From contig CDMY01000164.1 in the NCBI GenBank assembly GCA_001179505.1, positions 116,852 to 180,851 on the forward strand: DNA of 64,000 bases. The letters are read 5' to 3'. Under the pieces are notes generated by a model. It saw only the letters and a list, made by a program, of their open reading frames with translations. It was not told the DNA's origin and did no database searches. This DNA comes from Vitrella brassicaformis CCMP3155 (taxonomy: Eukaryota; Protista; Chromerida). Made by a program: the position numbers and the translations under genes. Of this stretch, positions 46,458 through 64,000 are shown one piece after another (position 1 is the first letter of the stretch; each line of letters opens with the position of its first letter).

Positions 46458-49400
46458 GTGCTACACGTATCGGGATTACCTCCGCAAGAAGGGCAAGGAC
46501 ATCCCCAAGACGTGGGCTGCCAAGCAGTGCGGTGGGGGAAAGAGCAGCGGTGGTGGTGGTGGTGGTCATGCCGTCAGACTGGCCATCATGGACGAGCCGG
46601 CACCGCCTGCAGCCTCCGACGACACGCCGACACCACCCCACCCACCAGGGCCGACCCCCAGCACCACCCCGGACGAGTCAGCATACTACACTCGCACGGA
46701 GCTGACGGCCGGCACCGACTTCTCGGTCAAGGGCAAGCTTGGCTTCGACTTCGAGAAGGACCATCTGCAGCTGCCTGACCTGGATGAGGACGACAAAGTC
46801 ATCTTGCTGCTGCAGGACGGCAGCCAGTACGTTGTCATGGACGGCGGCGCATCGACGCACATCTTCAAGGACAAGAGGTTCCTCATCCCTGGCTCAGAGC
46901 GGCCCACTCCGGGACTCACCATCAAGACGGCACATGAGGGCCACGACCTCAAGATCCTGTGCAGGGGCGAGGCCATCATCATCGTCATCGACAAGAACGG
47001 CCAGCACTTGCCGATGAAGCTGGCCCCGATGTACGTCGCTCCCGACTGCCCTGCCACGCTCATCAGCGAGCGTCAGCTGCATACAAGGGGTGGTGGTGTC
47101 CACAAGGTCGCGGGGGAGGCCGACCAGGCCTACCTCTACTGGCATGTGATAGGCATCGACGGCATTCGGCAGACCCGTGTCGTCCCCCTGGACTGTGTGA
47201 CTGGCGGATATCGCTTGATGGTGCGGCCGTGGACAGAAGACGACGACAAGAGGGCAGAGGAGATGGCGGCGTACGTCACGGTGGGCGATTCCATGGAGAC
47301 GTCATGGGATGTGCTGCTGGCGGGTGGGGGCCGCACACATGATGATGATGTGAGCTCGAGCGACTCAAGCGACGGCGAGAGTGATGGTGACGGTGCGGAC
47401 GGGCTAGACAGGGACGTGTGTGAGGCTGATGGATGCGAGGCTGATGCGGGCAGACAGCTATCAGAGGTGATCATGACCAACAAGGAGCGAGAGAACCTCC
47501 GCAACGCCTTTGAGCTGCACAAGTGTGCCGGCCACAAGGGCTTCGACGCGCTCTTGAAGCTATCGAGAACCCTCCGTGGCGCCAAGCCCGTCGACAAGGT
47601 CGCCTGAGGGGCCAGCTAGGCACCCTGGGGTCAACAGCCATCCTGGTCCTCGTCTTCGTGTGTGCCTACTCCAGCTACACGGTCTCCTACTCGGCCAACT
47701 ACAAGACGGAGGCGGCCGACATATTCAGGCACTTCCACCGAGAGACGAGCATCATCCAGGAGATCAACGGCCCCATCCGCGGCATCTCCGTCGACCCAGG
47801 CAGTGAGCTGTGTGAGCCCAACGCCCCGTTCGGCAAGGCCATAAAGGAGCTCGGCATCGAGGGGCCCATCGTCACGCCAGCCCGCCGACACGAACACCAC
47901 GGCAAAGCTGAGAGGGCGATTGGCGTCCTGGGCGAGATCGGCCGGACGGTTCCGGTGGCCAGCGGGCTGGACGCCACCCACTGCGGCCAGTACGCCTGGC
48001 AGTATGCGGTGCAGACCTACAACATGACGGCACTCGTCAAGCACAACGGGCAGACACACACATCGGAGGGCTGGTGCTTCGAGGGCCGCGACCCGCACGT
48101 ACACCACCTCCACCCCTTTGGATGCAGCGCGACCGTCCTCATCCCCAAGGAGCGTCAAGGTCATCGCCTGTAGCCTCGGGGGGAGGCGGGGGTGTTTCTG
48201 GGCTTTGACCCCGACAACAAGGACACTTCACTCGCATCTATCGAGGCATCGACGTCAAGTTCGATCACTTCTTCTATCCCCTCAACCCATCCCCGTATCC
48301 AGGGCTACGTTTGTCGGGAGCAGTGAGTCGGGTGGGGGCGAGACGTCGACTCGCTTAGGGGGTGCTGCTGGGGCGGACGGAGACACCACCCAGCAGCAGC
48401 AGCAGCGACAAGTGCAGCAGCCCCCATCGCAACCCGTGCAGCTGAAAGTAGCGGAGCGACCTCAGCGAGATAGGAGGCCTCCGGCACGGCCCTCGGACGA
48501 GGGATATCAGTGGCATCGCCCCGCAGCCCCGCCGCGACAATCGACACCTCGCTCTCAGCAGGACGGCCACCCTGCTGCTGGTGTGCAGATGGAGGAGGAG
48601 ACCGTGTCGGGCGGGGTGCAGCCGGACGGCGAGAGCCGGGCTGCTGTTGATAATGCTGGTGTCGAGGCGGGTGAGAGCCCAGCCGCTGAGCCCGTGCCTC
48701 AGCAGGGGCGTCTTGGGGGCGAGGGCGCCGAGATAGTCGTACGCGTAGGGGTGGAGGAGCTCAGCAACACGGCCAGCAAGCCACTAGCGCAGCCCTCTCC
48801 CATCCAGCCGTCTGATCAGACGGCCGTCTCACCCACACCACCACCCCCAGCGGCTCCATCTCAGACTGGTGACGCCCCCCACAACCGCAGCGACGTGTAC
48901 TGTGCCGAAGGCAACGAGCAGCCGGCCGAGTACAGGGGCAAGGCGTTCAACAAGTGGATGCTGCCATGCCATCCCATGTGGCCATGCACCTACAAGAACC
49001 TCACTGCCTACCAGCGGCCGCGGGTTAAGGAGCTACGCCGCTACCTGGCTGCAGCGGGCAAGCCGGCATGAAATGAGTCACGGCTGAGGGCACAGGCAAA
49101 GAAGGAGTGGAATGCAGCCGACCAGGCGAGACGGAAGATGGGTGTGGAGGAGGCGGAGGCGGTCTACTTGGCCGCCTGCTGGGGGGCGGAGGAGGCCTAC
49201 GTGGCCACCAGCTTTGGGGTCGGGGAGGACCTGTCGTCTTCCGCTGACCCGGCTGCTGACGCCGTGGATGCGGCTTTGTCCGTGGGCGAGTTCGGCGGCT
49301 CCACTGGCACACCACTGGATCGTCAGCTGCTGATCCTTCGGGCGCAGGAGGCCGACGTGAGTGTGTCTGACAACGACTACGCCAAGTGGATGTCGAACAT

Positions 49401-50931
49401 GAAGGTCACGCCGTCAATCATCAGCAAGATGAGCCCTGAGAACCAAGAGAGGTTTCGGGAGGCGGATGCGGCAGAGGTCGAGAAACTCGAGCAGCACGAG
49501 ACGTACATTTGGCGCAAGAGACGTGAGGTCCCCAGAAGCTCACAGATCTTCCACATCTTGGCTGTGAGAACGACCAAGGCCGACGGGCGGCCGAAGACAC
49601 GGCTTGTCATCAACGGCAGCCAAGACGAGCGACAGCACGAGACGCTCTATGCTCCCACCAGCCGCACCGCCACGGTCAAGCTGCTCATCGCTATGGGCCT
49701 CGCCAAGGGCCACGACACAGAGCAGGCCGACGTCGAAAGCGCCTTCCTGCATGCCTCTATGCCCGAGGAGCAGCAGCCCGTCTTCGCTTACCCGACGGAC
49801 GAGATCCTCGCCCGCCACCCAGACAAGAAGAAGTACGAGGACATCCTCAACGACCACTTCGTTGATGTCCTCAAGCGAGAGGGCTTCAGCCAGTCAGCGG
49901 TGGACAAGGGGCTGTTTTATCACGAAGCCAGAGACCTGTACATCAACCTGTACGTCGATGACGCGCTGCTGATGGGGCCGCCGGAGGGCAGGGAGTGGCT
50001 CAAGGAGCTGCTGGCGAGCCAGTTCAAGATGAAGTGGCTGGGCCGTCCACGGCTGTTCGTCGGTATGGAAATCGAGTACACCACCAACGGCGTCATCATC
50101 CATTAGACCAGCTACGCTAACAAGATCGTCGAGGCCTTCCTGCCCCCCAACAGCCGGCCCGTCACCACGCCGATCGCCCCCGGCATACACATCGGCACCG
50201 AGCCGCTTCCTTCGGACGAGGAGTGGGAGCACTCACCCCTCCGCAAACTGCCCTACCGGCAGGTTGTTGGATCCGTCCTCTACCTGGCCACCGGCACACG
50301 GCCTGACCTCCTCTACCCAGTGAAGGAGCTGGCCAAGTGGATGTCGAGATGGACCCAGGACGACTACGATGCGGCGTTGCGTGTGTTGCGGTATGTGAAG
50401 GCTCGCCCGAGCCTCGGGGTGCAGTTCGACAAGGGCGGCGACCCCACACAGCTGGTGGGGTATGCGGACGCGTCATTTGCCGATTTGGCCGACAGGCGAT
50501 CGACGTCTGGATGGCTCTGGCTCTATATGGGAGGCATCGTCAGCGCTCAGTCAAGGACGCAGCCGAGAGTGTCCACCTTAATGGTGAAGGCCGAGTACAA
50601 GAGCGTCTCTGAGTGCGCCAAGGACGGCGATGCCCTCGCCAACACCCTCAAGACCATCAACGTGTCCGTGGCGCGGCCGCTGACGCTGTACAGCGATGGG
50701 ATGGGGGCCTGCTACGTTGCGTCCAACAAAAAGGACAGCCGCCTGCTGCGGCATGTGGATGTGCGTTACCACCACGTGCGTGAGCTGGTGGGGGACGGGC
50801 TGCTGCGGGTGGTGCACATCGCTGGAGCCGACAACCCGGCTGACATCCTCACAAAGCCGATGGACCGCGCCACTTTGGAGAAGCACCTGCGGACCCTGAA
50901 GATGGTGCCGGTGCAGCCGAGCAGTGAGTGA
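46458..50931 (+). pseudogene. copia pol: protease, integrase, RT and RNase H, with frameshifts, stops and deletions
   Basis: VMDGGASTH (PR), LHKCAGH (pre-IN), VDPGSE..HGKAERAIG (IN), QADVESAFL..LYVDDAL (RT), YADASFA..RRSTSG..HVDVRYH..NPADILTK (RH). There is a TAG at 50104-50106, and the K.LYGLKQ..R.W segment of RT is missing. Confidence 0.92.
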
Positions 50932-60170: not shown

Positions 60171-60343
60171 ATTTTCATCCATTAATGGTGATGTTCGACC
60201 ATGCTTCCTTGTTTGGTGATGAAAAGGCTTGGACAGCTCCACGACCTTTTCATCCATTAATGGTGATGTTCGACCATGCTTCCTTGTTTGGTGATGAAAA
60301 GGCTTGGACAGCTCCACGACCTTTTCATCATTAATGGTGATGT
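60171..60343. repeat. 75-bp tandem repeat, about 2.3 copies
   Basis: ATTAATGGTGATGT recurs at 60181, 60256 and 60330. Confidence 0.9.
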
Positions 60344-61070: not shown

Positions 61071-61140
61071 ATTCCCATGGGAATGACCATTCCCGTGGGA
61101 ATATTCCATTCCCGTGTGAATAATCCATTCCCGTGGGAAT
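61071..61140. repeat. array of four 14-bp palindromes ATTCCCRTGGGAAT, period 18-19 bp
   Basis: Copies at 61071, 61089, 61108 (one mismatch) and 61127. Confidence 0.9.
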
Positions 61141-62031
61141 AATAGCCTGGCCGGCCAGTCATTTTTTCTCGGCCAGGGACACAACACTGTCCTGAGCGGC
61201 CACTCAACCCGCACGCACCATTGATCCTTTTTATTTGAAAAATGAGTCATAACAGCCGCATTTGCCTCTTTGAATCAGTAAAAGCGGAGGCTACAGCGAC
61301 ACGTCGCCATCACCTTCGAACAGAACATTGAACAAATGACTGTACTTATGTCGCCGTGCTTCTGGCGTGCGCCAGAAGCGTAATGTTGCATGTCTCTGCA
61401 AAGCGTCTCACAGCAAACAATGCCACACGTCAACCGGCGTGGTGCGAGGCCTTTCTGCGGCGAGGTATTTCGGCATGGTGATGTTCTGCATGTCAAGACC
61501 AAACTTCCCTTCTTGCTCCTCCTTCATTTTTACAGCAGCTGTGCGCTTGATGTCGTCTGTCAGAACCTAGTTGTGATAGGTTGCCTGTTGTGATGTTCTT
61601 TTGTGTGAGACTTCTCATTCATGATATTGGAGCCAGCTCCTGTCCGTCGAGCTGATGAAGCACCACGCGTCCCAAGTGGCGAGTCGTCACAAGGCGCGGC
61701 GGCCGCCAGAGGGCCACGGAGGGCCAGCGCGTTTCTCGAGGACTTCGTCTTCGGCGGGGCACACAGGCCACACACCAGCCCCTCTTCGGGGCTGTGAGGT
61801 GGGTGGCTCGATCTCAGTGCAGTGTGTATGTGTGTATCGTGATGCATGTCTCACGCTTGTTTGCAGTGTCGACATGTGAACTTCGTCCCCGCTCAAATCT
61901 TTACACACCAATGCGCATGATAATCTTATGCATGTATACATGTCGTGTTGTAGCGTTTGCAACTTCTTTTTTTTTATTCCTTACTCCCAGCATAACACAG
62001 GACAAGATAAGTCCTCCTGACACTCTAGCAC

Positions 62032-64000
62032 TCAGCCCCAGACTTCCTTCTCGGGGCACCTCGCAATTGGGCATTCCGTTATGGGCAGAACAGGCAACTT
62101 CTCACAACTCGAGGGATTTTGACAGGTGACATCAAGCGCACGAATGCCCGAATAGCTCGTCGAATACCGCCAAGCACGGAGAGCGTTGCCGGTGGAGGGA
62201 CACACGCGATTGACTTCCCTGGATCCAAAGACAGAGAGATGCAGCTTGTATGCGGTGTTGTGCTGCTCACTCACTGGCTTACCCCGAATCTGTCGCGTCA
62301 ACCAATCGAGGAGACGCAATACTCACTAGATACTTGCCGCCCGCCAGTCTCTGGCAGGATGAGACGAAATCCGCCCGTGTGAGGTCAAACTGGAAGACCT
62401 GCTCCGTATCAGCCACCCAACGACTCGGATCTCCATATGGTCTCCCGTACTTTCGAATCTCCGGCGTCCGAAACTCCTGCCATAGCAAAGCAGGCAAAAG
62501 GGAGAAATTCACTCGATATTCAAGACCCTTGCATGCCCATGTCAGCACCTGACAACAGCTTCCCTCTGCCAAACACCCATTGTTCAGCAGGACGAAGTTG
62601 CGCGTCGGCGACACGTCACATCTCGCCTCCTTGATGGCACCGAGCAAAGTTGTACTGAAGCGAATGTCATTGAAGCTCCACTTGGCACTGTGGCTGGTGT
62701 AGAGGACGCGATTAGCGTCAAACGGGTCCGCGCGATAGTTGAAGGGACGGCCATAACGGAACAGAAAATCGCCTTTGGATGTGGCTGCCTCGGCGGTGGT
62801 GATGGAGCGGTCGATTACGTAGATTTCGCTTGTGTGACTGATGAGACAGCGCATAAGAGCAGCAAAAGGACAGCATAGAAGAGACAAAGCGTGACGCTCT
62901 CACCGGGACGATATCATGATCTGGTCCAGCTGCTCGTTGTAGTCGAGTGAGTTCCAGTGAAGCCAGTCCACTGAAATTGAAAAGCTTATGTCCCTCGCTG
63001 TCACGGGCGGGATATTGATATCCAGTCTGTAGTAGTAGTCGTCTGGATGGTCGCAGTAAGGGACGTAATTGTCCTTGCTCCGGTCAAAATCCTGGACCAC
63101 AAGAGCGATACAGAGACAAAGGGGGAAGCCACACACTTACCTGGATCAGGTGGTCCCACATTCTCCAACCTGCCAGTGCACGACAGAATTTAATGGCAGA
63201 CAGCGTGATTTACACAAACATAATTCTGCTGTGGTGCCTCTCATCCTATACTTACGCCACACTTCTTCTGCTGATTTCTTGCCGACCGGCGTGACCTCGA
63301 CGATCTCCTCTGTCAGAAGATAGCCCGACTTGTTTTGGTTGTCTGGTACGTCTCGTGCAGGGTCGCGGCCGGCCTGAATGGCCTCAGCGTAGTCCTTGAC
63401 GACCCACAGGAGGTACAAGATGTTGCCGTTCGGCAGCTCAATTGCCTCGTGGTGCTGAATGGCGACGCGCCCCCTCTCGAATTTTGTGGTGTTGAACTCC
63501 CACTCAATCTGTATATATAAAGGTGTATGTGTGCATCTCTTTCGTCAGTGCAGTTTCCGTACCTCATCGTTGTGATTGACCATTTGCAGGATGCCAGCGC
63601 GCCCACCGTACGGGAAAACCGGATCCTGACGCAGAGGGGGCCGAGTGATGTCAGTGGCAGCCCGAAGGAGCCAGCCATTCCTCATGATGGAGGCTGAACC
63701 AGACGCCGGCGGACCAGCCGCTATGTTGAAGGTCTTGGCGACGCACAAGTTCGAATCATAGAGATACGCCACGTTGGTCCCGAGGGGCGCCCACAAAGTC
63801 AGCTGGTCCATACCTTTCCCTGGCATGCTGCCTCCACGTCCGGTGTTCTCGCTGAGGACTGATAATACTGAGGCCACACAAAAAGGCAGCCGTTCCATCT
63901 GTGCCAGTCCTATGGCATGTGCGGTCATCTCTGTGCATGGCTGACCACCTGATGTGTTGGAGGTGAGGTTGCCCTGATGCATGGAAGTATCCACGTCATC
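62032..64000 (-). CDS. aryl-sulfate sulfotransferase (ASST-type beta-propeller), multi-exon, 5' end outside the window
   Basis: RNGWLLR..YGGRAG../IEWEF..QHHEAIELPNGNILYL..EAIQAGRDP..EIVEVTP..VWR/WRMWDHLIQ/DFD..DIN..DWLHWNSLDYNEQLDQIMISSR/HTSEIYVID..GDFLFRYGRP..SHSAKW..LLNNG..CQRL..RAWRY. Five phase-consistent GT-AG introns. Confidence 0.88.

Follow-up and report, generated by a model that had tools for sequence, protein, structure and literature searches.

The stretch of DNA analysed here (64,000 nucleotides of contig CDMY01000164.1 of Vitrella brassicaformis CCMP3155) is referred to as the window. Vitrella is a chromerid alga, a coral-associated, free-living relative of apicomplexans. On the minus strand of the window, a genuine nuclear gene that is spliced and conserved extends from the window end (position 64000) to its TGA stop codon (62034-62032); it encodes a protein of the aryl-sulfate sulfotransferase (ASST) family. 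At a probability of about 0.6, this is a functional gene of eight exons and about 543 codons whose product is a secreted beta-propeller (PF05935/PF14269) and an ASST independent of 3'-phosphoadenosine 5'-phosphosulfate (PAPS).

In the proposed mechanism, the enzyme would enter the secretory pathway and act there or outside the cell on phenolic substrates. The sulfuryl group of a phenolic sulfate ester would move onto the histidine of the TSHSAKW motif to give a sulfo-histidine. It would then be passed to another phenolic acceptor in a ping-pong reaction without PAPS. The gene would descend from a prokaryotic one, with introns, and subsequently a second copy, arising in the Vitrella lineage.

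Gene structure and family assignment

Translated from 64000 to 62000, the minus strand is open over long stretches that lie mostly in one frame and are separated by short GT..AG-ended interruptions. The gene model has eight exons and seven GT..AG introns of 49–86 nt in the window, and the frame is open across every junction. The exons sum to 1,497 nt with a GC content of 0.56 and the introns to 472 nt with a GC content of 0.49.

Contigs from four public runs (X1, X2, X3 and X7) were aligned to window positions 61500-64000. The contigs of X1, X2 and X7 omit exactly all seven introns (81, 54, 86, 49, 66, 72 and 64 nt). All seven are retained in the contigs of X3, as expected of genomic DNA. The skipped segments read CT..AC on the plus strand, which equals GT..AG on the gene strand. 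Transcripts are the best explanation for contigs without introns in three runs; the run type of X1 and X2 is recorded only as 'RNA?', a guess. The individual features are given below. Profile positions and bit scores refer to the family profile described after the list, L083 and L084 are contigs that reach beyond the window end, P0002 is a Vitrella paralog and P0202 a Vitrella partial protein.

63949-64000, minus strand: exon E0, truncated by the window end; from the frame and splice model and a junction in the contigs, with the upstream part from L083 and L084
63868-63948, minus strand: intron 1, 81 nt, GT..AG; skipped in the X1, X2 and X7 contigs, GT..AG retained in L083
63563-63867, minus strand: exon E1, first blade of the propeller, divergent; profile positions 37-108, 11.2 bits
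63509-63562, minus strand: intron 2, 54 nt, GT..AG; contig junctions, E1/E2 junction also in P0202
63256-63508, minus strand: exon E2 with the HHE...LPNGN motif; profile positions 113-184, 51.4 bits; Pfam PF05935; Atlas
63170-63255, minus strand: intron 3, 86 nt, GT..AG, interrupts an Arg codon; contig junctions
63141-63169, minus strand: exon E3, 29 nt, with the WRMWDHLIQ motif; profile positions 186-194, 10.3 bits
63092-63140, minus strand: intron 4, 49 nt, GT..AG; contig junctions
62904-63091, minus strand: exon E4 with DWLHWNS; profile positions 195-245, 44.2 bits; PF05935; 3ELQ numbering
62838-62903, minus strand: intron 5, 66 nt, GT..AG, interrupts the codon (CG/T) equivalent to Arg374; contig junctions
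62549-62837, minus strand: exon E5 with SEIYVIDRS...GDFLFRYGRP...TSHSAKW...LLNNG; profile positions 247-302, 75.1 bits
62477-62548, minus strand: intron 6, 72 nt, GT..AG; contig junctions, same junction in P0002
62283-62476, minus strand: exon E6, divergent blade with the SSCQRL motif; profile positions 366-386, 3.8 bits; extent from P0002 and a contig junction
62219-62282, minus strand: intron 7, 64 nt, GT..AG; contig junctions
62032-62218, minus strand: exon E7, final ASST-domain strand (LRAWRYSTSYSG) followed by the Cys-rich tail and TGA at 62034-62032; profile positions 422-446, -0.9 bits
61883-62031, minus strand: 3' untranslated region (UTR), at least 149 nt; the spliced X1 and X2 contigs extend to 61883

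Two other exon boundaries were considered and rejected. A donor of E6 at GTGAGT 62326 is ruled out by the paralog protein and the contig junctions, which place the end of E6 at 62283. Reading 64000-63563 as a single exon is ruled out by the 81-nt intron within it. Intron 6 stays in frame, and an open reading frame (ORF) of 202 residues therefore reads through it.

The exons were searched and scored one by one, never as a joined protein. In Pfam, E2 matches PF05935 with 12.6 bits (model positions 92-126) and E4 with 19.7 bits (170-193). These matches are colinear, and both are to PF05935 and not to PF14269. With the natural 202-residue ORF (62282-62887), a word search matched two proteins and no more, and an exhaustive HMMER search of 1.84 billion representatives matched 55. 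Beyond three Vitrella-like fragments, the best E-value of the exhaustive search is 1e-8, and the matches mostly cover the first 57 residues of E5. Ten relatives from this search were tested, and all ten contain PF05935 and PF14269 above the cut-off; several bear sorting tails of the type IX secretion system (T9SS) or dockerins.

The family profile was made from 35 ASST proteins among the relatives found in the exhaustive search. Exons E1 to E7 are colinear and abutting on this profile (positions and scores in the list above), and the two split codons coincide exactly with the profile positions 185 and 246 left between exons. Since E2, E3 and E4 had no role in the choice of profile members, their matches independently confirm the family assignment as well as the splice model. 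In the Atlas, E2 was matched to ASST clusters with a score of 0.93, and a fungal cluster is among its best matches. The Atlas result for E5 is uninformative (top score 0.87, unrelated propellers). The NCBIfam search gave no match, and phmmer searches of the PDB with single exons gave chance matches only. The length of the predicted protein and the profile coverage of 37-446 would fit a complete beta-propeller.

The original prediction, made from the window alone, had proposed an ASST with spliceosomal introns and a Cys-rich C-terminal tail. The family holds, with E2, E4 and E5 colinear on the profile at 51, 44 and 75 bits. In the proposed check with an ASST hidden Markov model, the PF05935 matches are colinear but lie below the cut-off of 24.2 bits, and the 35-protein profile matched significantly. 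The GT-AG introns are borne out by the contigs of three runs that skip them, but their number had been put at five and is seven. All three motifs that had been singled out are present (QHHE in E2, WLHWNS in E4 and SHSA in E5), and the candidate catalytic histidines are retained according to the profile alignment to 3ELQ and the column conservation described below. The tail is indeed rich in cysteine, as E7 holds 5 Cys in 62 residues.

A paralog is found on Vitrella contig CDMY01000797 (L001 1-700; P0002). It has the E5/E6 and E6/E7 introns at the same positions, so at least those two introns are older than the duplication. Its E6 is shorter, the Cys positions of the tail are retained, and a contig end truncates it as well. 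An environmental version of this paralog is represented by P0003.

The environmental contig L083 (ENA ERZ893784) spans the whole gene with 93% identity. Divergence from L083 amounts to 4.1% in exons and 7.6% in introns, and all seven GT..AG pairs are retained. The codon changes are synonymous in 37 cases and non-synonymous in 18; in the catalytic exons the corresponding counts are 8 and 2 (E2) and 8 and 1 (E5). By these counts the gene is under purifying selection.

The 5' end of the gene lies outside the window. L084 (CDMY01000767), a contig of the 2015 Vitrella assembly, matches the last 651 window bases with 98.6% identity. The frame of E0 runs upstream in L083 and L084 to the first in-frame Met and opens with MMAILVVL[IV]G in both. 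L083 continues with FLIGSASA and then APESRG, which gives a hydrophobic core and small residues at -3 and -1. L084 is broken by a gap of Ns after MMAILVVL[IV]G. From this upstream reading, the window lacks about 45 codons, including the start Met, and the coding sequence comprises about 543 codons. Retrieval of the 5' exons, which had been suggested as a way to find a signal peptide, has by inspection yielded a signal-peptide-like start in L083 and L084. The protein very probably enters the secretory pathway.

In the 2015 assembly (L084 5637-6660) the contig end truncates the gene, and the N gap lies within exon E0. Because the contig end and the gap break the gene, there is no full-length protein in the searched databases and the gene is unannotated in the 2015 annotation. 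A long ORF of the window, looked up by exact match, corresponded to no record. The CCMP3155 partial protein P0202, from the end of contig CDMY01000767, carries the E1/E2 junction with identical residues. P0202 starts in a wrong frame (MAQMTWILPC...) before the true E1/E2 reading; its 5' part is mis-modelled.

Active site and the case for ASST activity

The residues around the sulfated His436 in AssT are His252, His356, Asn358, Arg374 and Thr501 (PMC13426309; bioRxiv 10.64898/2026.10.08.757629). Three histidines are strictly conserved across 22 ASST clades (PMC13426309; bioRxiv 10.64898/2026.10.08.757629). The family profile matches E. coli AssT (pdb entry 3ELQ) with E=2.6e-13 and 52.8 bits, and this alignment is consistent with the published numbering. 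The DW.H.NS...SSR pattern aligns to His356, Asn358 and Arg374, and the His of the profile motif QHD aligns to the sulfo-histidine His436.

Through the profile, DWLHWNS of E4 lines up with NWAHVNS of 3ELQ. The equivalents of His356 and Asn358 are encoded at 62959-62957 and 62953-62951, and their columns are conserved to 100% and 99%, respectively. The equivalent of Arg374 is the split codon CG/T, whose first two bases are at 62905-62904 and which is interrupted by the intron 62903-62838. It encodes Arg and follows the equivalent of His356 by 18 residues, the spacing found in E. coli AssT; its column 246 is variable in the subfamily (H 71, R 59 and P 22 of 176) and weakly diagnostic. The His of TSHSAKW (E5, codon 62692-62690) occupies the His436 column, H294 of the profile, which is His in 100% of 176 proteins. 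By spacing, the Asn codons of the NNG motif (62584-62579, E5) correspond to Asn421 of the Salmonella enzyme.

The two His codons of the HHE motif (63454-63449, E2) fall in columns H125 and H126, which are conserved to 100% and 99% in 168 family proteins. Its spacing in the coordinates of Pfam and of the profile makes the HH[DE] motif the likely equivalent of His252. The His of WDH (E3) is in column H191, which is 100% conserved and invariant in the subfamily. Overall, the window copy retains 18 of the 20 columns that are conserved to at least 99%, 35 of 46 at the level of at least 95% and 66 of 91 at the level of at least 85%.

Several points weigh against a functional, secreted PAPS-independent ASST. 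The subfamily with the WDH and IDHS motifs has no characterised member. The characterised ASSTs belong to other clades, and the profile reaches only 52.8 bits with 3ELQ and 33 bits with 9KF4. No single exon attains the Pfam cut-off of 24.2 bits. The N-terminal sub-profile, aimed at His252, found no match in the PDB, so the proposed equivalence comes from spacing and not from an alignment to AssT at the level of residues. Near-invariant residues of the subfamily are altered (H256R, 98% His; N276R, 99% Asn; G283D; Q293S; D127E), and the first and last blades of the window copy are divergent. The signal peptide was read by eye from L083 and L084, without a predictor and not from the window. Furthermore, a Ser/Thr/Arg-rich stretch follows the predicted cleavage site and could be transit-peptide-like. 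Finally, the case for horizontal gene transfer draws on distribution, and the exons point to no single donor lineage.

Given the Ser/Thr/Arg-rich stretch, a bipartite leader of the plastid type is a minor possibility. Secretion agrees better with the abundance of cysteines and with the N-x-S/T sites.

A protein with the ASST fold but an altered role is a possible, though not a probable, alternative. Such a protein could be inactive, use other substrates, carry out other chemistry or merely bind its ligands. This reading would account for the invariant histidines of the subfamily itself (WDH and IDHS), which are absent from E. coli AssT, as well as for four of the substitutions (H256R, N276R, G283D and Q293S), the divergent terminal blades and the loss of conserved positions (just 66 of 91 retained at the level of at least 85%). 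On the other hand, all residues linked to catalysis are present, namely the equivalents of His356, Asn358, Arg374 and His436, the Asn of NNG and both His of HH[DE]. The most strongly conserved columns, 18 of 20, are retained, and the excess of synonymous changes in E2 and E5 points to purifying selection on the catalytic exons. An active ASST is the preferred reading.

Distribution, origin and genomic surroundings

With the family profile, 7,891 of 8,000 scored candidates belong to the subfamily at E<=1e-10. Those that are named or typed are prokaryotic, and many have T9SS or dockerin tails. The subfamily is present in at least 596 prokaryotic species genomes. Its carriers include KSB1, Anaerolineae, Bacteroidota, Planctomycetota, Verrucomicrobiota, Actinomycetes, Myxococcota, groups of the Candidate Phyla Radiation (CPR) and Thermoplasmatota archaea. 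Each window exon finds the same prokaryotic proteins, with summed scores of 120–155 bits. The identity to all 80 named loci is 35–47%, and no phylum is consistently the nearest exon by exon. Among the 20 hit clusters with source names that were examined, there is no eukaryote name. Below E=1e-10, only Vitrella-like fragments were found among the 1.84 billion representatives, a library whose coverage of eukaryotic proteomes is not established.

This distribution makes a prokaryotic origin of the gene likely, and no donor lineage stands out. The lateral acquisition followed by intron gain that the original prediction had put forward is upheld as to the introns. Its lateral part is likely from the distribution, and ASST-like proteins with PF14269 do exist in fungi. 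The alternative sulfation chemistry that it had also ascribed to the alga stays a proposal, in view of the uncharacterised subfamily and the several near-invariant residues changed in this copy. The gene is integrated in its host, as seen in seven spliced introns, its presence in two Vitrella assemblies and an environmental relative, and a paralog with two common intron positions.

An intron-split (GT..AG) member of the same subfamily is present on two further contigs (L085 347-2580 and L086 72-990) with GC contents of 63–65%. They come from two independent metagenomes (JGI 3300045300; ENA SOLA22) and are eukaryote-like. The L085 gene resembles the Vitrella gene no more closely than bacterial proteins do and has introns at other positions. 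A eukaryotic clade common to both is ruled out, as the identity of L085 ranks 107th, 130th, 10th and 165th in four regions. This suggests that the two genes represent separate entries into different protists and not one eukaryotic clade.

Another contig, L087 (3405-4649), was considered as a eukaryotic copy and rejected, since its segments abut with frame shifts and without gaps. This contig, assembled from long reads at low coverage, holds a bacterial ASST gene next to a TIR-domain gene. The frame shifts are probably sequencing errors.

Vertical descent from an old eukaryotic ASST-like gene that was lost in most lineages is unlikely. In its favour, PF14269 ASST-like proteins are common in fungi, E2 has a fungal cluster among its top Atlas matches, the eukaryote-like contig L085 carries an intron-split member, and the Vitrella gene is at roughly the same distance from all prokaryotic phyla. 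However, outside the Vitrella-like fragments nothing closer than E=1e-8 was found in the exhaustive search, and the nearest relatives are prokaryotic wherever they are named or typed. The L085 gene, moreover, is no nearer than bacterial proteins and differs in intron positions. Contamination by bacterial DNA, an artefact of assembly or a dead pseudogene might be suspected from the overwhelmingly prokaryotic family and from the contig end and N gap that interrupt the gene in the 2015 assembly. All of these are highly improbable: contigs of three runs lack the seven spliceosomal introns, two Vitrella assemblies and an environmental relative contain the gene with frame and splice sites intact, the paralog has two intron positions in common with it, and synonymous changes outnumber non-synonymous ones.

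Beyond the acquisition of a prokaryotic gene, a wider reading can be put forward tentatively, and we regard it as rather doubtful. Vitrella may possess an extracellular toolkit for PAPS-independent sulfation derived from at least two prokaryotic ASST lineages. With the gene described here, a eukaryotic member of the large, uncharacterised T9SS/dockerin-type 'WDH' clade would have been recognised for the first time, and this clade would have entered other marine protists independently (L085/L086). If so, microbial eukaryotes would repeatedly have acquired, through ASST transfer, a cofactor-free way to sulfate phenolic compounds of the wall or of exudates.

A dispersed repeat is located at window positions 61584-61870, just downstream of the 3' UTR. 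It shows very high contig depth with many loose ends in all four runs, and a copy with 85% identity is present on Vitrella contig L001 (4459-4688). Tandem repeats lie between the ASST gene and the next gene, at 60172-60343 (75-bp unit, 2.3 copies, 98% matches) and at 61071-61143 (19-bp unit, 3.9 copies). The ORF 49138-50103 on the plus strand encodes a Ty1/copia-type reverse transcriptase domain (RVT_2, 69 bits) and is probably a retrotransposon remnant. It lies within a GC-rich, AT-skewed block of approximately 44-50 kb, in which the large neighbouring ORFs have no Pfam match. Pfam scans of the larger window ORFs and of the region upstream in L084 revealed no sulfur-related or otherwise informative neighbour genes. 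An Rfam search over the window from 58 to 64 kb gave no match.

Comparison with known systems

PAPS-independent ASSTs are described as essentially bacterial in recent reviews (PMC13426309; bioRxiv 10.64898/2026.10.08.757629). If active, the Vitrella enzyme would transfer sulfate from one phenolic compound to another outside the cell, in the absence of available PAPS. This may bear on the chemistry of the cell wall and sporangium and on interactions in the coral holobiont. A eukaryote-adapted ASST from an uncharacterised clade may also be of interest for biocatalytic sulfation.

The nearest relatives form a prokaryotic extracellular subfamily (PF05935 and PF14269), with an identity of 35–55% in E2, E4 and E5. 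Examples are proteins from metagenome-assembled genomes of KSB1, Planctomycetota, Verrucomicrobiota, Myxococcota and Thermoplasmatota (e.g. P0088, P0075 and P0199). The motifs in common are HH[DE]..LPNGN, WDHL.QD, DW.H.NS..LDQI, SEI..ID.S.TT.EAA, GD...R.G.P,.H..W, NNG and QRL. The Vitrella gene, on the other hand, has seven introns and a signal-peptide-like start, and a Cys-rich tail replaces the T9SS or dockerin tail. It also differs by H256R, N276R and Q293S and by its divergent first and last blades.

AssT of E. coli CFT073 (pdb entries 3ELQ, 3ETS and 3ETT; clade 1) belongs to the same Pfam family, and its His356, Asn358, Arg374 and His436 are conserved in the window protein. AssT is exported to the periplasm, and the Vitrella protein is predicted to be exported as well. 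The relationship is remote (52.8 bits to the profile). AssT is a dimer with an N-terminal beta-sandwich domain, whereas in the Vitrella protein the propeller would follow directly on a signal peptide and a short linker. AssT also has no WDH motif and contains an insertion of approximately 18 residues before its His356.

The ASST of Streptomyces sp. (clade 14; pdb entries 9KF4 and 9KF6) gives a weak profile match (E=2e-7, positions 192-402). This propeller consists of one domain and is similar in size (472 residues), and no publication describes it yet. The fungal Arylsulfotran_2 proteins (PF14269) are eukaryotic ASST-like propellers, and none of them is named among the nearest sequence relatives. 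ASSTs are well described and ASST-like proteins are known in fungi; new are a publicly unannotated gene and a clade without a characterised member to which it belongs.

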